A stretch of 64,000 nucleotides of DNA from Klebsormidium nitens. Taxonomy: Eukaryota; Plantae; Klebsormidiophyceae. The translations under genes and the position numbers were made by a program. The stretch is taken from positions 41,877-105,876 of the forward strand of contig DF237258.1 in the NCBI GenBank assembly GCA_000708835.1. The letters are read 5' to 3'. Shown one piece after another: positions 10,591 through 58,465 of this stretch. Positions within the stretch are counted from its first letter, which is position 1, and every line of letters starts with the position of its first letter. The notes beneath the pieces are model-generated. The model searched no databases, was not told the origin of the DNA, and was given only the letters and a program-made list of their open reading frames with translations.

Positions 10591-12731
10591 TCAGGCTAGA
10601 AGCGGTTCGTCCCTGGGCCCCCTTAATCTGGCCGCTACCAGACGGCACCCCGCCGCAGCGGCCTTGCCCACCTGCCTCACGACCGTCCACACGAGACACG
10701 CGCCAAGGTACGCGAAGAAGGCACCCAGTGCTAGGACTGCCCACGTTTTCACAAAGCCGCAGACGAACAGGCCAGCAAAGATACCCATTGGATCCGGCCT
10801 GCCTTGCAGCGTGGCCTCAAGCGGGGGCCACACGAAGATCCCTGCCCAAAACAGCTGGATAGTCATCCACTTGGCGTCGGTGGACATGAAGGCGAACACT
10901 CCCCAGACAAACAGGTAGTCGAGCAGCACGGCCAGGCAGAGGATGAGGTCCGCGAGCTGGAAAAAAGCAACTGCCCTATCCAACTCCTGGAGAGCTCTTT
11001 GGAACCGATACGCGGACTGAACTTCCTCTTCCACAAGGGCCAGGAAGGCGTCGTCAAAAGCTTCGTCTCTTTCCGTTCCGCCCTCTGCCCCTTCCGTTTG
11101 CAGCGGAGCCCCTCCGCGGTACCGCATGCGCACGAGCCTCACCCGGGCGCCCCGCTCCGAAGCGCACAGCTCTTTGAGTTTGGAGAGAACCTGCTGAAAT
11201 CCGCCCGCGCTTTTGGAGTAAAAGGCTGGCCGCAAGTGGATTGCGACCTCCGAGACATGTTCGTTCCGGTCTAAGAACAGCGCAACGGACTCGAGGTCCG
11301 TCACAGACAGCGGAAAGTCGAGCTCTAGAGTGTGAAGGCCCGTGCTCCTCTGCAGCTCTGCGCAACCCAAAATGGCCCGCGCCATGTCCGGCTTCTCGAA
11401 CGGAAAGTGCTGTTCGAAGACCACGCAGCCGATACCGCAATCCCCGATCAAACCGCAGAGGAAGCGGAATCGATCCCCCTTCAGCAGGCAGTTCCGGAAG
11501 ACCAAGCGGAGCTTGTCGGGCGACTCTTGGAGATATTGCCGCAGCTCTTCGAGGAGTGGGGGCTTGGCTTCTTCTAGAAGCTCGAAGACTACAGTCTCAC
11601 TGACGACTTTGGCCGTTGCACCTCTCATGCCCGACGCAGACCTGCCTGAGATCGCTTCCACCTTTTCTCTGAGCTCGACTAGCGAAAAGATTTTGTCGAC
11701 GAACATTTGGTAGGCAGCTTTTGAACCCTCAAACTCAGGCGCCGTGGAAGCAGCCACACGCTCCAGCTTGGATTCAATCGCTTCGTATTCAGGGGCTGCG
11801 TCTTGGCCTTGCGCATAAGAGTTGAAGCGGCTCAGGCATTCCGGCCTCCAGGGATGGACTCCGGTCACTAACAGGTTCACGTGCAGCGAGCAGTCGAGGG
11901 CCAGGCTGCGGATGACGTCAAGCACAGGGTGGTTGGAGACAAAGCCAGGGTCGCTTTCTCCGTCCATCTTTAGGTCCACGTGATACCCTCAGGCCGCTGA
12001 AAGAGCGATGATGCAGGCTGCCAGGAAGTTTGGGTACAAGTTCACTGCTCCAGAGACGTCAAGGCAGACTGCCCGCTTTGATGACCCCTTGCCTGCAGGC
12101 TGCTTTACGCCTCGGAGGCGGGCCAGCACCTTCCTTGCGAAAGCAGCAGGACTGTGGGCCAGCTTTGGGCAGGCCAGAAGGAGATTCCATGCTGCTGTAG
12201 CTATTCTCGGGATGCGGTTGTATTGCTCAAAGAACCAGAGGGAGCACGTCTCCTCAGCAAACTTAAGTCGGCCCCACTCCTCAGGCACTGCCGTGTAATG
12301 GACCCTAAGCGGCACTATCAGGCCGAGATTGAGAAAGGTCTTGGCAAATGAACCTGAAGCTCGCGACTCTGCCCTTCCGATCTCGCTGGAATATTCCACT
12401 TTGTGTTCCAAATAGCTTGTGGTGACGTCAGCCAGGGTCGCGGCCATGCGTCTGATCTGCGGTGCAGCTGCCTGCATGCCTGGGTCAATCCGGCCCAGCA
12501 GACACAAGATCTGCTCTTCCGTGCATTCAAAAACATCATGTCACCGAGCTCGATGTCCCGCCACAGCTCCGGCACCCTCAGCGTGTCCCGATGGGCTTTG
12601 TTCAACAGCTCCAGCGGCAACCGGTCCTTGAGATCAACTTTCTGCAGTATGATGCGGAGGACGTCAAGGGGGAGGGCACAGAACGCCCCTGCTTCGCCTG
12701 CACGAGTTGATTGGGCGTGACCTTGCGCCAT
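10591..12731 (-). pseudogene. Intronless F-box protein gene with degenerate LRR/RNI-like middle and C-terminal multi-TM region; disrupted by a 1-nt frameshift and an in-frame TGA
   Basis: ATG at 12731 (the track start at 12740 is TTG). F-box FCALPLDVLRIILQKVDLKDRLPLELLNKAHRDTLRVPELWRDIEL. One extra T in the T5 run at 12533-12529 joins it to ECTEEQILCLLGRIDP... That frame hits TGA at 11991-11989 and continues in the same frame (GYHVDLKMD...) to the stop at 10591; repaired length is ~713 aa. The C-terminus has several hydrophobic helices (FFQLADLILCLAVLLDYLFVWGVFAFM; IFAGLFVCGFVKTWAVLALGAFFAYLGACLVWTVV). Confidence 0.75.
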
Positions 12732-50268: not shown

Positions 50269-53200
50269 TCAGCTAACCGGTGCAAAGGTGTAGGCGGAGG
50301 TGACGGTCGCTGGAGCACTGGGACCGGTCGCCGAGGCGTATGTTTGCTGCAAGAGGCAAGCGGGATCAGTAGGACTCGTGGTCATAGGCCGAGGACGCTC
50401 AAGGTTTCGCTTCAACCAGACGTTTCAGGACAGTCGACTGGTAGGCTCTACTTGCGCAAAGTATGCCCAGAACTTGAAGATCTTCTATTATACGGACCAT
50501 CAGGCAACGAAGCGGTTCGATCACAACACGCAGAGCGTCGCAAAATGCTCTCAGGTGGACGTGGCAAAAAGACTTACTGCTCCCGGCACGACCGTGAGAC
50601 GGGCCCCCGTCGCAGAGCGCAGCTCCACGAAGTTGGCCCGGGATGCCAAGCCGGCCACCTTCATGAACACCTCGCTGGGCTGGCCGCTCACACCAAACGT
50701 GACAGTCTGTGCAAGCCACGAGTCAGCTTCACACAAAGGAACTGTTTTCACAAAGAACTCACTTAATGAAGCCTCTCGGTGACAGCATCTCTTACTGTCT
50801 GGAATCGGACCAGATTTTGTCACACGACTTACAAAATTGGAATTAGTAGGGTTGATGTTAGAAAGAACTCTCTCGAGTGATCTTCGAACATTCATTGTCG
50901 TACAGACCAGAAGCTCAATTTCAGGACTGCCCCGGCGAGAGCCGCTGCCACGTGTCCTCACCTCGAGGGTCTCCAGCTGAGCTGGAGTCAAGGTCAGAAG
51001 CTCGGTGGCAACAGGTGTGCGCATTTCGTACAGGCTCCGTCCAGTGGAGACGACATCTCCTGTAGAATAGCAAGCACGATCTTCACTACAGCTCTGCATA
51101 CCACGGGTAATTCGTGGTGACTCTTTGCTAAATTACCTTGTAGATCGATCTCCCCACAGAATGCAAAGTCTTACTGTGGAAAGCTATGTCTTCGCTGGAG
51201 ATGATCGAAGTATCCCACTTTTCAAGAGACGATTGATGCTCAGCATCATATGAAATTCCTCTCTTTCACGTGTCACACTAGCTATTGTGGCTGGACCTCC
51301 CTCGCAACAAGGCGGGGCTTTGAACTCTGTGGACGAGAAAACTCACCATTGCCCCGGCTCACATAGAACCCGCCCCCGACAACCTTCACGCCGCCGGTCA
51401 CCCGTCCAGCTGCAGACAAATTTTGAGTTCTGGATATGGCAGCCTTTCTTGGACATATAATTCCAAACAATGGTTGTGGATTGGTCAAATACTGCAGAGC
51501 CGCACTTGTAGCGCGTTGCAGAGAGAGTCGATGGCGCTTGCAACTGACGAAGACAAACGATTGCAGAAACAACTTAGATTCAATTTCGAAGGCACAACTT
51601 ATTTGAATCACGTTCTTTGGTCTGCACAGTATCCGGACTCGTCTGGCGTCTGGCAATCTATCCTGTCAACAATTGTGCAGTCACTTTCGGCTCAAAAGCC
51701 ACACTGTCCGAATCGACCAGGCTTGAAATTCAGGAGCCTTGCAACCCGTCCTGGTGGTTGACTGTTCAAAGGCGACTCTCCGTGGTGGCTTAGGATCACA
51801 CTGATGGCTCTCCCAGAAACGTTGCATTTTGTAGTCTGGTCCAATTGATGCTGCGCAGCCAATTATGTCCTACAACCGAACAAAACCAGTGTCCGAAGGT
51901 GCTCAGGTGCATTCATACAAAAACGGAAGGCAGCCGTTGAGCCTGGTCTGCTTACCCAGGATGGCAATTCCTATCCAAATGCCAATGACAATGATGAGCA
52001 GAATGACCGCGATCCCGGCGCATCTGCGGTACCACTTGACTTTCTTCTTGAGCGTCTCATACTGATGAGCAGCCGCCACTAGGTCGTCTCCCTGGACAAA
52101 TATAAGGGGAAGTCGAATGATTGAGACTTCTCAAGCCCCAACCAGCTCTTTCTGGTTGCTCTGATTACTTCAAGTCCCCTTGCCAGCTTACGCAACAAAC
52201 AGGGGTGATTAGTCAGAAACGAATCCGCGCAGAGGAACAACAAGAGCAGGGGTTTACCAACGATTCTGCAAGTCCTTAACTCCACAGCTTATCAGCTTTG
52301 AGATCGCAGGAAATACATCTTGTGGTCCTTTTGTGACCACAAAAAAGATCACAACCACTTGAAAGAGTGTAAAGTGAGAAATGAGACAATGAAGTATCCA
52401 GAAGTGGGGGCATGACTTACTGTAATGAGCCCATCCTTGTCGCGGTCCAGCTGACCCAGGGCTGCCTGCCGCGCATATGCAGCGGGGTCAAAGCCATCTT
52501 CCTCTGCAGGAGGGGACGCCTCTACAGGGGGCCCAAGGTCCGCCTCCAGGTCTGTAAAAAACAAAGAATCACGGCTTTTGTAAACGTAACTTCGTAGCTT
52601 CAAGGGACTTAGTCCAGATGAATGACATCAAGAGAGTATGTATTCCAGAAGCTAGTCGAGTCTCTGTGGGTAGCTTGCTCACAAGTGATAAATTGATGAG
52701 GCCACAAGATATGCAGATACCTGCTTACCTGGCTCTGGTGCAACGGCATGCTCAGGTGGAGTGGCATCCTTCACAGGGGCTTCCACCTCAGGATGAGGAG
52801 GGGTATCAACAGCCACAGGTGCCACAGCAGGGACCACCTCTGGGGCCATGATTGGTACCATCGCATGTGGCTCTTCAGGCTGCTCAATACCCTGCAGCAA
52901 CTCAGAGCAGCCTGGATCGCTCAAGGTCCCTGAATCCCCGGATGATTAAGCTTGAGTTACCACTTTTAAGACATGTAATCTGGCCCCAACTGAAGCAGAC
53001 GGGAGTTATGGCTGATACCAGATGCCTACTGAAGTCAACATATTGCAGCATCATAACAGGCAACAACAACGCCTTCAATAGAGACAACAGCATCAATCAA
53101 GGCAATCATTGGCAGCTTGCTGGCATTGCCTTGTGTCTGGAAGAAGCATCATAATGGGGTGCAACAGGCGATACTTGCCTTCATGAGTATCGGCTTGTCA

Positions 53201-53439
53201 GCATCTTGCTCAGTTGGCAGCTTTTCTTCTTTGATAGGGCTCTTCACAACTTTTGCTGACTCCTCTTCTTCCTTGATGCGCTTCTCATGCTCCACGACCA
53301 ATGTGCTGACCTTCCCTTCTTCAGTTGTGACCTTTCCGCCTTCAGGTGTAGCCTTTCCTTCTTCAGGTGTGCCCACGGCCGCAGCAGCTGCATTCCTGGC
53401 TGCAGCCACTGCAGCTGTTACCTCCGCTTCTGACGTCAT
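50269..53439 (-). CDS. Uncharacterised EF-hand / single-TM (type II) membrane protein, gene A; paralogue of gene B; 5' end uncertain
   Basis: Exons 53439(53462)-53179, 52891-52729, 52551-52421, 52091-51956, 51409-51347, 51059-50962, 50706-50578 and 50346-50269 join in frame: acidic Pro/Ala-rich N-terminus; QLDRDKDGLIT|GDDLVAAAH EF-hand; KKKVKWYRRC; TM AGIAVILLIIVIGIWIGIAIL; AGRVTGGVKVVGGGFYVSRGN|GDVVSTGRSLYEMRTPVATELLTLTPAQLETLE|TVTFGVSGQPSEVFMKVAGLASRANFVELRSATGARLTVVPGA|QTYASATGPSAPATVTSAYTFAPVS*. An acceptor at 53463-53464 implies an upstream UTR or coding exon. Confidence 0.8.
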
Positions 53440-54339
53440 CGCACCACTCTGGAGCGCTCTTTCTGATACAATAAGCAAGAAAGAAGAAGCTTTCAAGCGA
53501 TGTTTACTACGTTCCTAACGTCTCATGGTGCACCTCGAACGGGCAGCTCTTTCCAGCGGGGTGCAATGACAATACGAGACCGATCAAGGAGACATTGTGA
53601 AGAACTTCGCCAATGCTGCAGGCACACTCCTTGACTTTCGATGATGTGACTCTTCAGAGTTGATGCTTTCTCAGCTCATTGGCAGAGGCGCCTATTCGTA
53701 GCGCCTTTCGGATCAGTTCAAGGTTGGGCAGTGGGCAGTAGGTACCTACTACTACTGATGTCATAATACGGTGGTACGTCCAGCTTGGCAGACACGATCA
53801 GTGCTGACATCATGAGATTCAGCGCTGATTTAGCCACCTGATTTAGAACCAGTATGTTACATTCTCGTATCATGCATCGATCGTGTTGTCGGATGCACGA
53901 ATTCTCAACGAAGCTCGGCCCACGAGATCGGTGAAAATAAGTGCGGCGAATCTCGGGCACAAGCATGGGAGCGTTCTGATTGGACAATGGCGATCTCATC
54001 ATTCGTGACAGCGCATCTTCTTGACGTCACTCACATTTCGTGACCGTTGTGCAGTCCACCGTCTTTCCCTTTTCCTAGTAATTGTATGCCTAACAGAGAG
54101 AGCCAGTTGCTCGCTCCCGCATTGTTTGCCGTGGCCGACCCTTGACAGAGAGCAGTTTGAAGGCGACGGGTGTGCAATCCTGAAGTCAGTACGCAGGACT
54201 TCCAAGGTTCTTCTTCAGCCGTTCATTCTGGACCACTGAAGGTGTTGATTGACCCTGCTGAAGTGGGCATTGGCAACTGTCCTCCACGCACCAATCGCAG
54301 TCACTTCAACCTCCAGCTGAGGTTGCAAGTGGTAGTCCG
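53440..54339. promoter_or_regulatory. Putative bidirectional promoter between paralogous genes A and B
   Basis: About 0.9 kb between divergent start codons. Inferred from geometry only; no specific element identified. Confidence 0.4.
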
Positions 54340-57300
54340 ATGGGATTGTTCCGAAGAAAGTCCGTGGCTGCGCCAGCTACGTCAGCTGCAGAAAATGGCG
54401 AGGCGGTTGCCGTTGACATTGACGGGGAAAGCCAGCTGCGCCCCACTTCCTTGGTCCGCTTGAACACATTGCAGAGGAGCGACAAGGACTTCCTGAAGGC
54501 AAGGTGAGGGCTAGAGTTGGCATTGCTCTAGAAACATTTGTGGATGGCAGGCCATATATGTATTCTTTGTACTCTAAGTGCTCTTTGACAACCATATACT
54601 GATGTGTTCCTTGAACTTGTTTGTGACTGTTGGGATTAATGAAGCCCAATATGTTTAACCCGTACATGATGTTTATTGCAGGTTTGATCCAAACCAAGAT
54701 GGCATCATGTCGGTAAGTCATATTTCCTCCAGAGCTCTATAAGGAATCTGTTAATACGAGAATATCATACTCTTTTGAAAGTAGGTACATATCATATCTT
54801 TTGAAAGTAGGTACATGGACTCCAAGCTTACCAGTGATGATCTGTGCAATGCTGGTAGCCAATCCTGCAGATGCTCTTTTCTTCTTGGGGATTAGAATCC
54901 TGCTTTGATCTATAGAAGTGAATGGTCTTGATTCTTTGAATGATGCAGGCGGCTGACGTGGAGGCGGCCGCTCACCGCTTGCAACAGATGAAGTTTCGAT
55001 TGAACCGAAACTTTAAGGTAGGGCGTGGAGCCACCCAGCATTGCAGTGTCGTTCTTTCTGGTAGTGTTATGTTGGCCTCAGAGCAACACGCCTGCCTTAG
55101 TCTTGCTGGACTCTGCTCCGTTCAAAAAAGTCAGTATTGGAGAAGAAAACAAGTCTGCTACATGTACTGCTAAATCTTGCTGATACACTTGTGTTATACG
55201 AGCTGACAGCCCTTTTTTTGCAGCGTACATGTTGCGTCCTGATAACTGCCATTCTTCTTGTGGCCATCTCAAGCGTTGTCTGTGGAATCATCCTAGGTAG
55301 GGGCCAAACATCCTTACATTATGTCATCAGATATGGGGGCCCTCAGACCCACGAAGTCTTGTTTCAGGACGTGGTCTAGCTCTTCCTTTCAGAAACAAGG
55401 GCAAGCAGGGATGTGCCTGCCGTCAAAACCCCTTGGATCTCTTGCACTGTTGGCAGACACAAAAAGGTGCTGTTTTCAGCTGTGCAGACAATTCTTCTCT
55501 GATCACGCCTCAAATTCTCTACTGCTTTCAGATCAAAGGAGTGTCTCTCGGCAACACCTTGTATATCCTTTTGGGATAACTATCTGATGTGTTCAGTAAT
55601 TTTGCTGCAGCCTTTTTCTTCAAGAGCAGCACGCATGTCATTGGAAATAACGTCCTCGCTTGGCGTGGAAAGGGTGAGCCTTTGAGAAACCTTTCAGGCA
55701 GCTTGGTTGAAGAGCAAACGAATTGACTGCTGTACAGATGTTCTGGCACGTAACTTCCAAAATTGATCACGGGGTCGTCCGAGCAAGTATTCAACTTGAG
55801 ACGTCCAATTGCCTGTAACTTGCTCCAGGTGCCCAGGTAGACAGTTTTGGCCCACTGTCAGCTTTCCCCTAAGTACGAGCACCTTGTTGTATGCAGATGC
55901 TTTTGTCCTGACTGCTCCGACTCGGGTGCGCACACGTGTGGAGGAGGTGGCACTCCTCACAGTCAACCCGGGATCTAGCGTGGAGAGCTGGCTCCAAACG
56001 GTTGAGGTCAGCACCACGGCTTTGTTTTCTTGTAGAAGTTTGCGCTGTACTCATGGTGTACTTTCCAAGGACTTCATCTCAAGCGCCAGCCAAATAAGTA
56101 CTTATTCCAAAAAGGGTGTCAGCACAGTCTGTTGATTTTGAAGAAGGTGGTAAGAACTGCTCCACCGTTTTGAAGTAGTTGCGGCGCCTGTTTGCTACAA
56201 TCCGTTAAATATTCGATCTCAGCTGTCATGCTGACCCCGAAATGTTTCTTTCCAGGCAATTGAGCTTCAAACGGCGGAGGGCCCGGTGCTGACCACCCAC
56301 TTCTTCAAGGTGGCCTCCACTGTGCTGAATGGGACAACCGCCACCTTTGCGGCAGCATATGGGGACGCCCTCGTACTCACCCCGACCACCGTAAGGATCC
56401 GTTTAAAGTCAAATTGCCGCCTTGTACGTCAATGCTTGCCTGAACACGCTGTTTTCTCACCTGCTGAGCACAAAACGCTGAAAGCCAGGCCAGGCGGGGG
56501 TGCTTTTGTGAACTCGGGACGAATCTAGGTGATCGAGGAGAGAGCCGTCTGAAGGGTTTTCTCGCTCGTAATGTCTCCATCCAAGTTGGCGGCTGTATTG
56601 AAGATTGCAATTTTACTTCCAAAAAAGTTTCGAGCGTGACACAGCGGATTTCGCTACCCTTCTCAGGCGGCGTTCCAGACCAGCGCTCCCGCTGCGTCCA
56701 TCCCGCTGTCCAACGGGACAGTCAGCTTCATTTCGGGGCAGCCATATCCATGTGAGTATTTGGCATCAGTCTAGCGGCTTTGAGCTGGCACTTGCAGTGC
56801 CTGTCTTGGCCTCTTGGTAGTCCGCCTGAGACACATACATCTGGACAAGCTTTTATCTGACACATGCTTGAGTACCACTGGCACGCTGACACATCGGTAG
56901 CGAGCTTTCCTTCTTCATCCCTTCTGAGATGAAGTCTGCACATCTCTTGGGGCGTTGGATACTCCACAGGATCATAAATCATCATCATTCATTGCGCAAG
57001 GCTGCCTTGGGATACGATTTCTTCCTGCGTCTCGTGCAGTTGTCAACTACTGCGGCGACCGGTCGCTCAACAACTGTGACCCGAGAGCCACGTGCACCAA
57101 CCGCTTCAGCTCCTTCGTCTGCACCTGCCCGCCTGGCTACCAAGGGCCCGGCACCACTTGCACAGGTGACGTCATCGGCCTGCCCGAAGAATAGGAAGCT
57201 TTGGACCGCTTTGGGCGACTCCCCATGCTTCGAAATTTTCGCTTCTCGAGTAGGCGCAGAGCTGATCAAAGCAGTCGATCGCCTGAACGGCTGCCTGAGC

Positions 57301-58465
57301 GAAAAGATCAGACGTTTGCAAGAAGGGAGAAGGGGGCATTTGCATAAGGTTGACCTAACGTCGTCTTTGTGGCTGTGAATCCAGATATCAACGAGTGCGC
57401 CCCCGGTGGCAACGTGACGAACACCTGCGCTCCAGTCGGGAGCGTCTGCACCAACACGCCAGGTACTACGGAAGACCCTAGCCCCAGTCCGCTCCATTGT
57501 CATCCCCAAGGCCTGGATGTTCTCGAAAGCGGTCACGATGATTGCTAAGCAATTGGCTGCCGCTGAAAGCCTCTCCCGCTGTTCTCGTCCGCTGTTGTCA
57601 TCCATTGAAAGTTCAGGTGTGACCTGCTTTCTTTGAGTCTGCTGTTACATGATTCGTCACAACGGAGACCAGGCCGTAAGTGGTGCCAATCAAATCTTAT
57701 TCTCCGCTTCTCATGTGTACAGGCTCGTACACGTGTGCCTGTGCCGCAGGGTACACCGGAAACGGGCGGACCTGCACACGTGAGCAATCGTCTCTGCCGA
57801 GCCTTTTCCTGACCAGCTCAAAAGGCAGATTTTTGCCTTCACTTGTTGAGGCTCTTCAGCACCTGTCAGGAGCGCATAGATATTAGGACTCTGTCTTCCT
57901 TGACAGTCTTTGGTGTTAATTGATGTACGACACCGCCTGCTCGACGTAACGCATTGCTGCGCTTTGTTTGAGATTGTGGAGATGAGCTTGATTGTTCACT
58001 CACGTCCTTTTTCACCCCCCCGCAGAGGTCGACGCGTGCCTGTCCCGGCCGTGCAACACCGTCAACGGCACCTGCTCCAACACCACGCCCGGCAACTACC
58101 AGTGCGCGTGCTTGCCGGGCTTCTCAGGAGATGGCAGGATATGCGTCGGTGAGTTCAAGATGCTTGTGGTCATGTTGAGAATCCTCCCAACTGACTTTTC
58201 TGAGACTCTTTTGCGCACCTATCCACAGAGGTCATCGGTCCACACACCCAGTCCTGTGGTGTTTCAGCAAGATTCCTTTGCTTGTTTCTCTGAGCAACCG
58301 ACTGCATTCCGACTCTTCTTCGGGCGAATTTGTCAGCGTCCTGCACAGCAGTTCAGTGATCCACTGACGGCTGTGTGGTTATGCGACTCGCTAATCGTGG
58401 GACCTTGCCTCTTTTTCGCCTCAGCCTCGAACTCGACAATTGGCAACACGACTACGAGTGGATAG
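54340..58465 (+). CDS. Uncharacterised EF-hand / single-TM (type II) membrane protein with three C-terminal EGF-like domains, gene B; 13 exons
   Basis: Exons 54340-54503, 54682-54712, 54949-55017, 55224-55296, 55611-55673, 55897-56006, 56256-56390, 56667-56751, 57040-57165, 57385-57462, 57723-57779, 58026-58148 and 58425-58465, all GT-AG and phase-compatible. Protein: MGLFRRKS...RFDPNQDGIMS|AADVEAAAHRL (EF-hand); KFRLNRNFKRTCC; TM VLITAILLVAISSVVCGIILAFFF; shared ectodomain; EGF1 YCGDRSLNNCDPRATCTNRFSSFVCTCPPGYQGPGTTC; cbEGF2 DINECAPGGNVTNTCAPVGSVCTNTPGSYTCACAAGYTGNGRTC; EGF3 VDACLSRPCNTVNGTCSNTTPGNYQCACLPGFSGDGRIC. Confidence 0.88.
54764..54816. repeat. Near-perfect 26/27-bp tandem duplication in gene B intron 2
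   Basis: atcata(c)tcttttgaaagtaggtacat occurs twice (54764-54790, 54791-54816). Confidence 0.9.

Follow-up and report, generated by a model that had tools for sequence, protein, structure and literature searches.

Two head-to-head genes for uncharacterised single-helix membrane proteins with a lone EF-type loop in the streptophyte alga Klebsormidium nitens

Recognition of membrane-anchored, single-EF-hand proteins as calcium (Ca2+) sensors in plants is only just beginning, the example found being OEF18 (At1g64850) of Arabidopsis, an 18 kDa, N-myristoylated protein located on the chloroplast envelope and on peroxisomes (bioRxiv 10.64898/2026.08.13.744648). In the anchor of OEF18 a KK/R motif lies between two hydrophobic helices, and both ends of the protein are cytosolic; its N-terminal part passes from monomer to tetramer on Ca2+ binding, with a dissociation constant of about 340 nM, and the protein forms homodimers as well as heterodimers with its paralogue (bioRxiv 10.64898/2026.08.13.744648). 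Two genes, here called A and B, lie head to head between positions 50269 and 58465 of a 64,000-nucleotide stretch of the genome of Klebsormidium nitens (the window, to which all coordinates refer unless another contig is named), and their products can be likened by description to OEF18: one predicted cytosolic EF-hand near a membrane anchor, no catalytic domain and a paralogue. They differ from it in having one helix followed by 120-270 amino acids on the far side, and neither shows the OEF18 architecture of about 18 kDa with two transmembrane helices around a KK/R motif (TM1-KK/R-TM2) and both termini in the cytosol. A and B are an annotated yet uncharacterised, genus-level orphan pair made of known parts and one unnamed domain, in a streptophyte alga that is used for tracing the origin of land-plant signalling.

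Three further systems bear a partial likeness to the pair. Caleosins (PF05042) of plants and algae also combine a single EF-hand with a hydrophobic membrane segment after it, but this segment is a hairpin with a proline knot and their C-terminal domain is cytosolic; neither A nor B gave a match to the Pfam Caleosin model at E values up to 10. Wall-associated kinases (WAKs) and vacuolar sorting receptors (VSRs) share with B the calcium-binding type of epidermal growth factor (EGF) module on the non-cytosolic side, a single membrane pass and the green lineage. However, WAKs and VSRs are type I proteins with a signal peptide, the former with a cytosolic kinase and the latter with a PA domain, whereas B has the opposite predicted orientation and no signal peptide, and Pfam gives no kinase or PA match in it. 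Teneurins are type II adhesion proteins of animals with EF-hand-like motifs in the cytosol and EGF-like repeats after the membrane helix, an order of parts that resembles that of B. This is an analogy of layout and not a sign of membership: teneurins comprise about 2,500-2,800 amino acids, with a Ten_N domain, eight EGFs, an NHL domain, a YD shell and a toxin-like end, while in the 384 amino acids of B no Pfam match to the Ten_N, NHL, YD-repeat or toxin-like C-terminal domains was obtained at E values up to 10, and EGF_Teneurin appeared only at E = 8.4, which is noise.

The DNA of the window is eukaryotic, has about 50% G+C and is rich in introns. Hand splicing gave the following two gene models.

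50269..53439, minus strand: coding region of gene A (KFL_003090180, GAQ86761.1), 352 amino acids, 1,059 nucleotides, 8 exons
53439-53179, 52891-52729, 52551-52421, 52091-51956, 51409-51347, 51059-50962, 50706-50578, 50346-50269, minus strand: exons of gene A
54340..58465, plus strand: coding region of gene B (KFL_003090190, GAQ86762.1), 384 amino acids, 1,155 nucleotides, 13 exons
54340-54503, 54682-54712, 54949-55017, 55224-55296, 55611-55673, 55897-56006, 56256-56390, 56667-56751, 57040-57165, 57385-57462, 57723-57779, 58026-58148, 58425-58465, plus strand: exons of gene B

The initial annotation of this DNA, made from its letters and open reading frames, had proposed these two divergent genes, and the translations of both models agree letter for letter with deposited K. 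nitens proteins, GAQ86761.1 for A (P0007) and GAQ86762.1 for B (P0001), each from scaffold DF237258.1. Its remark that the genes are hidden holds for the open reading frame track, on which hand splicing was needed, but not for the public annotation, which already carries both as "hypothetical"; the sole names given are the UniRef labels "EGF-like domain-containing" and "EF-hand domain-containing", and a literature search for the locus tags and accessions found no mention. All intron borders of gene B are GT-AG, as are those of gene A except for intron 1 (52892-53178, minus strand), which is GC-AG.

A and B are expressed and spliced. Transcript-like contigs from four runs, belonging to four studies, were compared over 50300-56299; the run type given in the records is a guess, and what spliced RNA would give is seen in the joints (GT..AG / CT..AC) and in the contrast of depth between exons and introns. 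The 20 listed runs contain one quarter to one half of the sampled words of the 8.2-kb stretch, which also fits spliced RNA. Contig joints fall exactly at the predicted borders of all seven introns of A and of introns 1-6 of B, and the joint of the GC-AG intron was seen in contigs of three of the four runs; the exon chains, for which a check against transcripts had been proposed, are thus supported at these 13 introns. Introns 7-12 of B lie beyond the compared interval, and their basis is the deposited annotation together with exon-by-exon conservation in two metagenome contigs described below. On exons the depth runs from hundreds into thousands; on the few unspliced contigs it stays in single or low double figures. 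Both genes are represented in all four runs, contig depth being no measure of expression. The contigs of gene A extend to 53712 and those of gene B begin at 54124, which points to divergent transcription from start sites about 410 base pairs (bp) apart; depth is zero at 53900-54099 in all four runs, and the two start codons are separated by 901 bp.

53713..54123, no strand: promoter region shared by the two divergent genes, bounded by the outermost ends of the transcript contigs

The two proteins are paralogues. In a blastp comparison they are 27% identical over 232 amino acids (E = 4e-10), and their local alignment score of 129 stands against a shuffle mean of 36 ± 5 (z = 18), a score reached by none of 500 shuffles. 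Taken by parts, the region before the membrane gives z = 8.8, the membrane helix alone an uninformative z = 1.5, and the region after the membrane a modest z = 3.8, with two of 500 shuffles reaching the score. Five introns are common to A and B, each in the same alignment column and the same phase.

Shared intron 1, phase 0: within the EF loop, after residue 9
Shared intron 2, phase 1: at the end of the membrane helix
Shared intron 3, phase 1: after the next exon, which has 63 nucleotides in A and B alike
Shared intron 4, phase 0: after LETLE in A and LQTVE in B
Shared intron 5, phase 0: after VVPGA in A and LTPTT in B

Besides these, the shared core of B is cut by two more introns, and the long N-terminal extension of A by two. 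All five intron matches had been listed in the initial annotation as marks of an old inverted duplication that left two divergently transcribed paralogues, and with the alignment statistics they uphold that view. That the A and B genes of Klebsormidium arose by an old inverted tandem duplication is therefore well supported, and they illustrate cleanly how shared introns date an ancient duplication.

For the placement of the two proteins in the membrane, the following features are relevant.

51956..52019, ending in the next exon, minus strand: membrane helix of A, residues 210-232, preceded by KKKVKWYRR and Cys209
55230..55296, ending at about 55622 in exon 5, plus strand: membrane helix of B, residues 91-116, preceded by KFRLNRNFKR and starting with the cysteine pair C91, C92
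53179..53439, minus strand: exon 1 of gene A, which together with exon 2 encodes an N-terminal region of about 150 amino acids, predicted to be cytosolic

Each helix is the sole strong hydrophobic segment of its protein (Kyte-Doolittle maximum 3.27 in A and 2.87 in B), and the N-termini of both proteins are hydrophilic and lack an N-terminal signal sequence. Lysines and arginines number six in the 15 residues before the helix and two in the 15 after it in A, and five and two in B; by the positive-inside rule this excess predicts an orientation with the N-terminus inside and the C-terminus outside for both. The three EGF modules of B, which are of the disulfide type, and its seven N-x-S/T sequons all come after the membrane helix and fit the same orientation. 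The type II topology put forward in the initial annotation is thus supported for both proteins as a prediction from charge distribution and, for B, from these modules and sequons. Throughout the family alignment a cysteine is kept without change where the helix meets the cytosol, and this residue is a candidate acylation site.

The N-terminal region of about 150 amino acids in A is rich in E, A, P and V, of low complexity and fast-evolving, with only 33-36% identity to the orthologues on the two metagenome contigs, and it has no Pfam match. Its tail (53179-53439, minus strand) contains loose repeats of the EEGK / PEGGK type. The orthologue in K. subtile is 14 amino acids shorter overall (338 as against 352), and its N-terminus appears to be one such unit short, which suggests drift in repeat number. 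The N-terminus of B (54340-54363, plus strand) reads MGLFRRKS and corresponds to MGLF(K/R)RKT in two relatives, including contig L001 (6944-6921), with Gly2 conserved; lipidation is uncertain because position 6 of the N-myristoylation consensus lacks the usual small residue.

Each protein carries one EF-type loop, which is interrupted by the first of the shared introns.

52421..52447, then GDDL at 52091-52080, minus strand: EF-type loop of A, residues 177-185 DRDKDGLIT, split by a phase-0 intron
54686..54712, then AADV at 54949-54960, plus strand: EF-type loop of B, residues 57-65 DPNQDGIMS, interrupted, as in A and at the matching loop position, by a phase-0 intron

Both DRDKDGLITGDD of A and DPNQDGIMSAAD of B match the PROSITE pattern PS00018, which describes a loop of 12 residues whose ligands at positions 1, 3, 5 and 12 are acidic or amide, with glycine at 6 and a hydrophobic residue at 8. 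There is one match per protein, and the pattern arose by chance in 7 of 20,000 shuffles (3.5e-4 per protein). It is also present in the two A-like proteins tested, P0002 of K. subtile and P0008, a metagenome fragment from the Joint Genome Institute (JGI). Across species, ligand positions 1, 3, 5 and 12 show only changes from D to N (position 3, in A-like proteins) or from D to E, and the B-like gene on contig L001 has E instead of D at position 12. A profile search of the PDB placed EF-hand proteins aligned on the loop at the top, at non-significant E values of 0.12 and above. In gene A no second hand was found and the sequence upstream of the loop is proline-rich, while the degenerate stretch DIDGES, found in gene B 31 residues ahead of the loop, lacks the acid at position 12; neither protein thus has a pair of EF-hands within one chain.

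Beyond the membrane helix, A has 120 residues and B has 268.

50269..51409, minus strand: post-membrane domain of A, exons 5-8, about 120 amino acids, predicted to be beta-rich
55611..56751, plus strand: exons 5-8 of B, post-membrane domain homologous to that of A
57040..58148, plus strand: three EGF modules of B, exons 9-12, the second starting with DINEC (calcium-binding type)

Pfam matched no family on the post-membrane domain of either protein, and the sequence searches described below yielded no relative beyond Klebsormidium; the initial annotation, likewise, had recognised no named family. The best conserved part of the domain in B is exon 7 (56256-56390), which is 89% identical on contig L001. 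The EGF modules are found in B only, as six-cysteine modules above the Pfam cut-off, the family being covered by entries PF12947, PF07645 and PF00008: EGF_3 (3.9e-22, 78.6 bits), EGF_CA (9.9e-17, 61.3 bits), cEGF (8.6e-22) and EGF (40.3 bits) each match three stretches. Gene A has a single cysteine and no EGF module. Each module of B is bounded by phase-1 introns, and the second is also split by an internal phase-1 intron. Exons of the 1-1 phase class are classically tied to module shuffling in animals, and the arrangement occurs here in a streptophyte alga. It suggests that the EGF stalk was acquired by B once the duplication had taken place, or else was lost from A.

At the level of sequence, the family is restricted to Klebsormidium in the collections searched. 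No relatives outside this genus were found in three word-indexed searches (with the B core, the A core and an A+B profile) or in one exhaustive search with a profile of exon 7 of A and B against 1.84 billion representatives, and two metagenome pattern scans gave no match. The word-indexed searches added only the A orthologue of K. subtile, about 90% identical, and the fragment P0008. The exhaustive search gave six matches, five of them of Klebsormidium type. The sixth, P0004, is a bacterial protein of 1,356 amino acids and is treated as spurious, its score coming from the summing of eight partial repeats: this surface-type protein has at least eight near-identical repeats of about 90 amino acids and reaches 58 bits against the 45-residue profile, and the partial matches cover profile positions 2-22, so that the hit is probably a repeat artefact and not homology. 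A further candidate, P0010, proved to be merely an unspliced reading of exon 6 of B in a close relative.

Two Klebsormidium-like metagenome contigs, L001 and L004, both from one JGI sample, carry A-like and B-like genes head to head with an exon layout matching that of K. nitens. The start codons are 809 and 931 bp apart on these contigs, compared with 901 bp in K. nitens, and exons 1-12 of gene B are conserved on both. Exons are 60-95% identical at the protein level, and the introns and intergenic DNA could not be aligned between K. nitens and L001 or L004. Both A and B are under purifying selection: comparison with L001 by the Nei-Gojobori method gave a ratio of nonsynonymous to synonymous rates (dN/dS) of 0.11 over 222 codons of A and of 0.16 over 345 codons of B, synonymous sites being almost saturated (dS of about 1).

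The working of the pair may be pictured by combining these sequence features with the analogy to OEF18, and the account given here is one that we hold to be somewhat on the probable side. A and B would be type II signal-anchor proteins whose lone EF-type loops pair across chains on Ca2+. Following sequence rules, the single hydrophobic helix would act as the signal anchor; the N-terminal part, consisting of a disordered tail, one EF-type loop, a basic helix and a cysteine at the membrane edge, would lie in the cytosol, and the C-terminal part, an unnamed and predicted beta-rich domain of about 110 amino acids, would lie in a lumen or outside the cell, with gene B adding a stalk of three modules of the calcium-binding EGF type. 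A lone EF-hand normally requires a partner hand, so by analogy it is most likely that the loop binds Ca2+ and that the loop of another chain serves as its partner. As with OEF18, a rise in cytosolic Ca2+ would then shift the protein from one oligomeric state to another within the membrane and so alter how the outer domains are spaced, homo-oligomers and A-B pairs being equally likely. A type II protein whose lone EF-hand runs straight into the membrane helix, and which carries EGF modules on the outside, would be a simple, kinase-free coupling of Ca2+ to what happens across a membrane.

Several results weigh against this account. The single EF-hand per protein claimed in the initial annotation agrees with the PROSITE pattern but is not confirmed by Pfam, where the EF-hand is covered by PF00036, PF13405 and PF13202: the EF-hand_6 and EF-hand_1 models reach A only at E values of 0.004-0.07 (13.3-17.3 bits, the cut-off being 25-25.4), and no EF-hand match is obtained in B at E values up to 10. 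Loop position 12 is aspartate and not the usual glutamate in both K. nitens proteins. The post-membrane domain of A contains no cysteine and no sequon, and A alone therefore gives no sign of passage through the secretory pathway. The AlphaFold2 models, built from alignments of four sequences only, are too poor to use, with a mean predicted local distance difference test (pLDDT) of 48 for the A core and 46 for B, and their outer domains are strands at pLDDT below 50. One element of the models speaks for the account: they place a helix-loop-helix whose exiting EF helix is continuous with the membrane helix, at pLDDT 60-75 on that stretch only.

The same Pfam scores and the aspartate at position 12, together with the missing second hand in A and the restriction of the family to Klebsormidium at the sequence level, would fit a loop that has lost Ca2+ binding and acts solely as a spacer of helix-loop-helix form or in binding proteins. 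A and B would then be independent, lineage-specific structural proteins of the membrane or facing the wall, and their order a relic of the duplication. We regard this as unlikely, since all canonical ligand positions are kept in both paralogues despite divergence to 27% identity, and the between-species changes at these positions, D/N and D/E only, are hard to explain without selection on metal binding. Residence in an endomembrane (endoplasmic reticulum, Golgi, vacuole or contractile compartment) is compatible with the account of Ca2+-paired signal-anchor proteins and differs from it in location only: the beta domain and the EGF modules would be luminal, and a process in the lumen would be informed of cytosolic Ca2+ through the EF-hand. 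Luminal EGF repeats are also known from plant vacuolar sorting receptors, the outer domain of A is free of cysteines and sequons, and the stretch of helix plus membrane segment weakly and non-significantly resembles SNARE, synaptobrevin and US9 profiles; the seven sequons and EGF modules of B, however, are equally consistent with a surface protein, and the endomembrane location is best treated as a tentative possibility, rather doubtful yet less so than a loop that does not bind Ca2+.

It has also been proposed, in the initial annotation, that A and B are the two subunits of a heteromeric surface sensor or adhesin; their EF-hands would pair across chains and the two genes would be co-expressed from the shared promoter. 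The need of lone EF-hands for a partner, the presence of transcripts of both genes in each of the four runs, with start sites some 400 bp from each other, the retention of the pair and its orientation on L001 and L004, and the heterodimers of OEF18 with its paralogue would all agree with such an arrangement. However, the need for pairing is satisfied equally well by homodimers, contig depths do not measure co-expression, and neither the intergenic sequence nor the palindrome TGACGTCA found in it is conserved on L001 or L004. Since an S8e-domain gene and a type IA topoisomerase gene are conserved alongside, the kept head-to-head order amounts to ordinary local synteny and gives no special evidence of functional linkage. 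A two-subunit partnership of this kind appears improbable, more so than a loop without Ca2+ binding. Lower still is the chance that A and B belong to a widespread unnamed algal family, with members in diatoms, haptophytes and green algae too, of type II proteins that join a lone cytosolic EF-hand and a membrane helix to a new outer beta domain, and that in Klebsormidium EF-hands paired between A and B chains form a kinase-less device linking cytosolic Ca2+ to the arrangement of an EGF-bearing surface domain. In the ESM Atlas, the A core resembles clusters of proteins of 120-355 amino acids from diatoms, haptophytes and chlorophytes, with scores of 0.92-0.95 and 200-217 of 256 language-model features in common, whose members are hypothetical or weakly EF-hand-positive; the low-confidence Atlas model of the A outer domain compares with two such clusters at template modelling scores of 0.74 (107 residues) and 0.56 (86 residues). 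These look-alikes are a lead, drawn from models, to possible relatives. If they are true relatives, a broad uncharacterised family would emerge; if not, A and B are a genus-level orphan pair of limited reach.

For the surroundings of the pair, the gene beyond B encodes an S8e-domain protein of 260 amino acids and the gene beyond A a type IA topoisomerase of 944 amino acids that carries zinc ribbons and CCHC fingers. Their counterparts recur on Klebsormidium-like metagenome contigs.

L003 1-3349 and 15349-22942, L001 18110-18262, L004 12493-12783: flanking genes

The 5' leaders of the two genes were compared as well. That of gene A (53440-53712, minus strand), of about 273 nucleotides, contains three upstream ATGs, each opening a frame of only 2-3 codons, and that of gene B, of 216 nucleotides, contains none. 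The palindrome TGACGTCA occurs seven times in the window where 1.04 copies are expected, a number reached by none of 100 shuffles. It was considered as a shared promoter element and rejected, being missing from the corresponding intergenic DNA of L001 and L004. The copies lie at 11913, 12423, 44554, 46894, 53431, 54022 and 57167; the copy at 54022 falls between the two start sites, and the copy at 53431 starts at base 2 of the gene A start codon and spans the next two codons.

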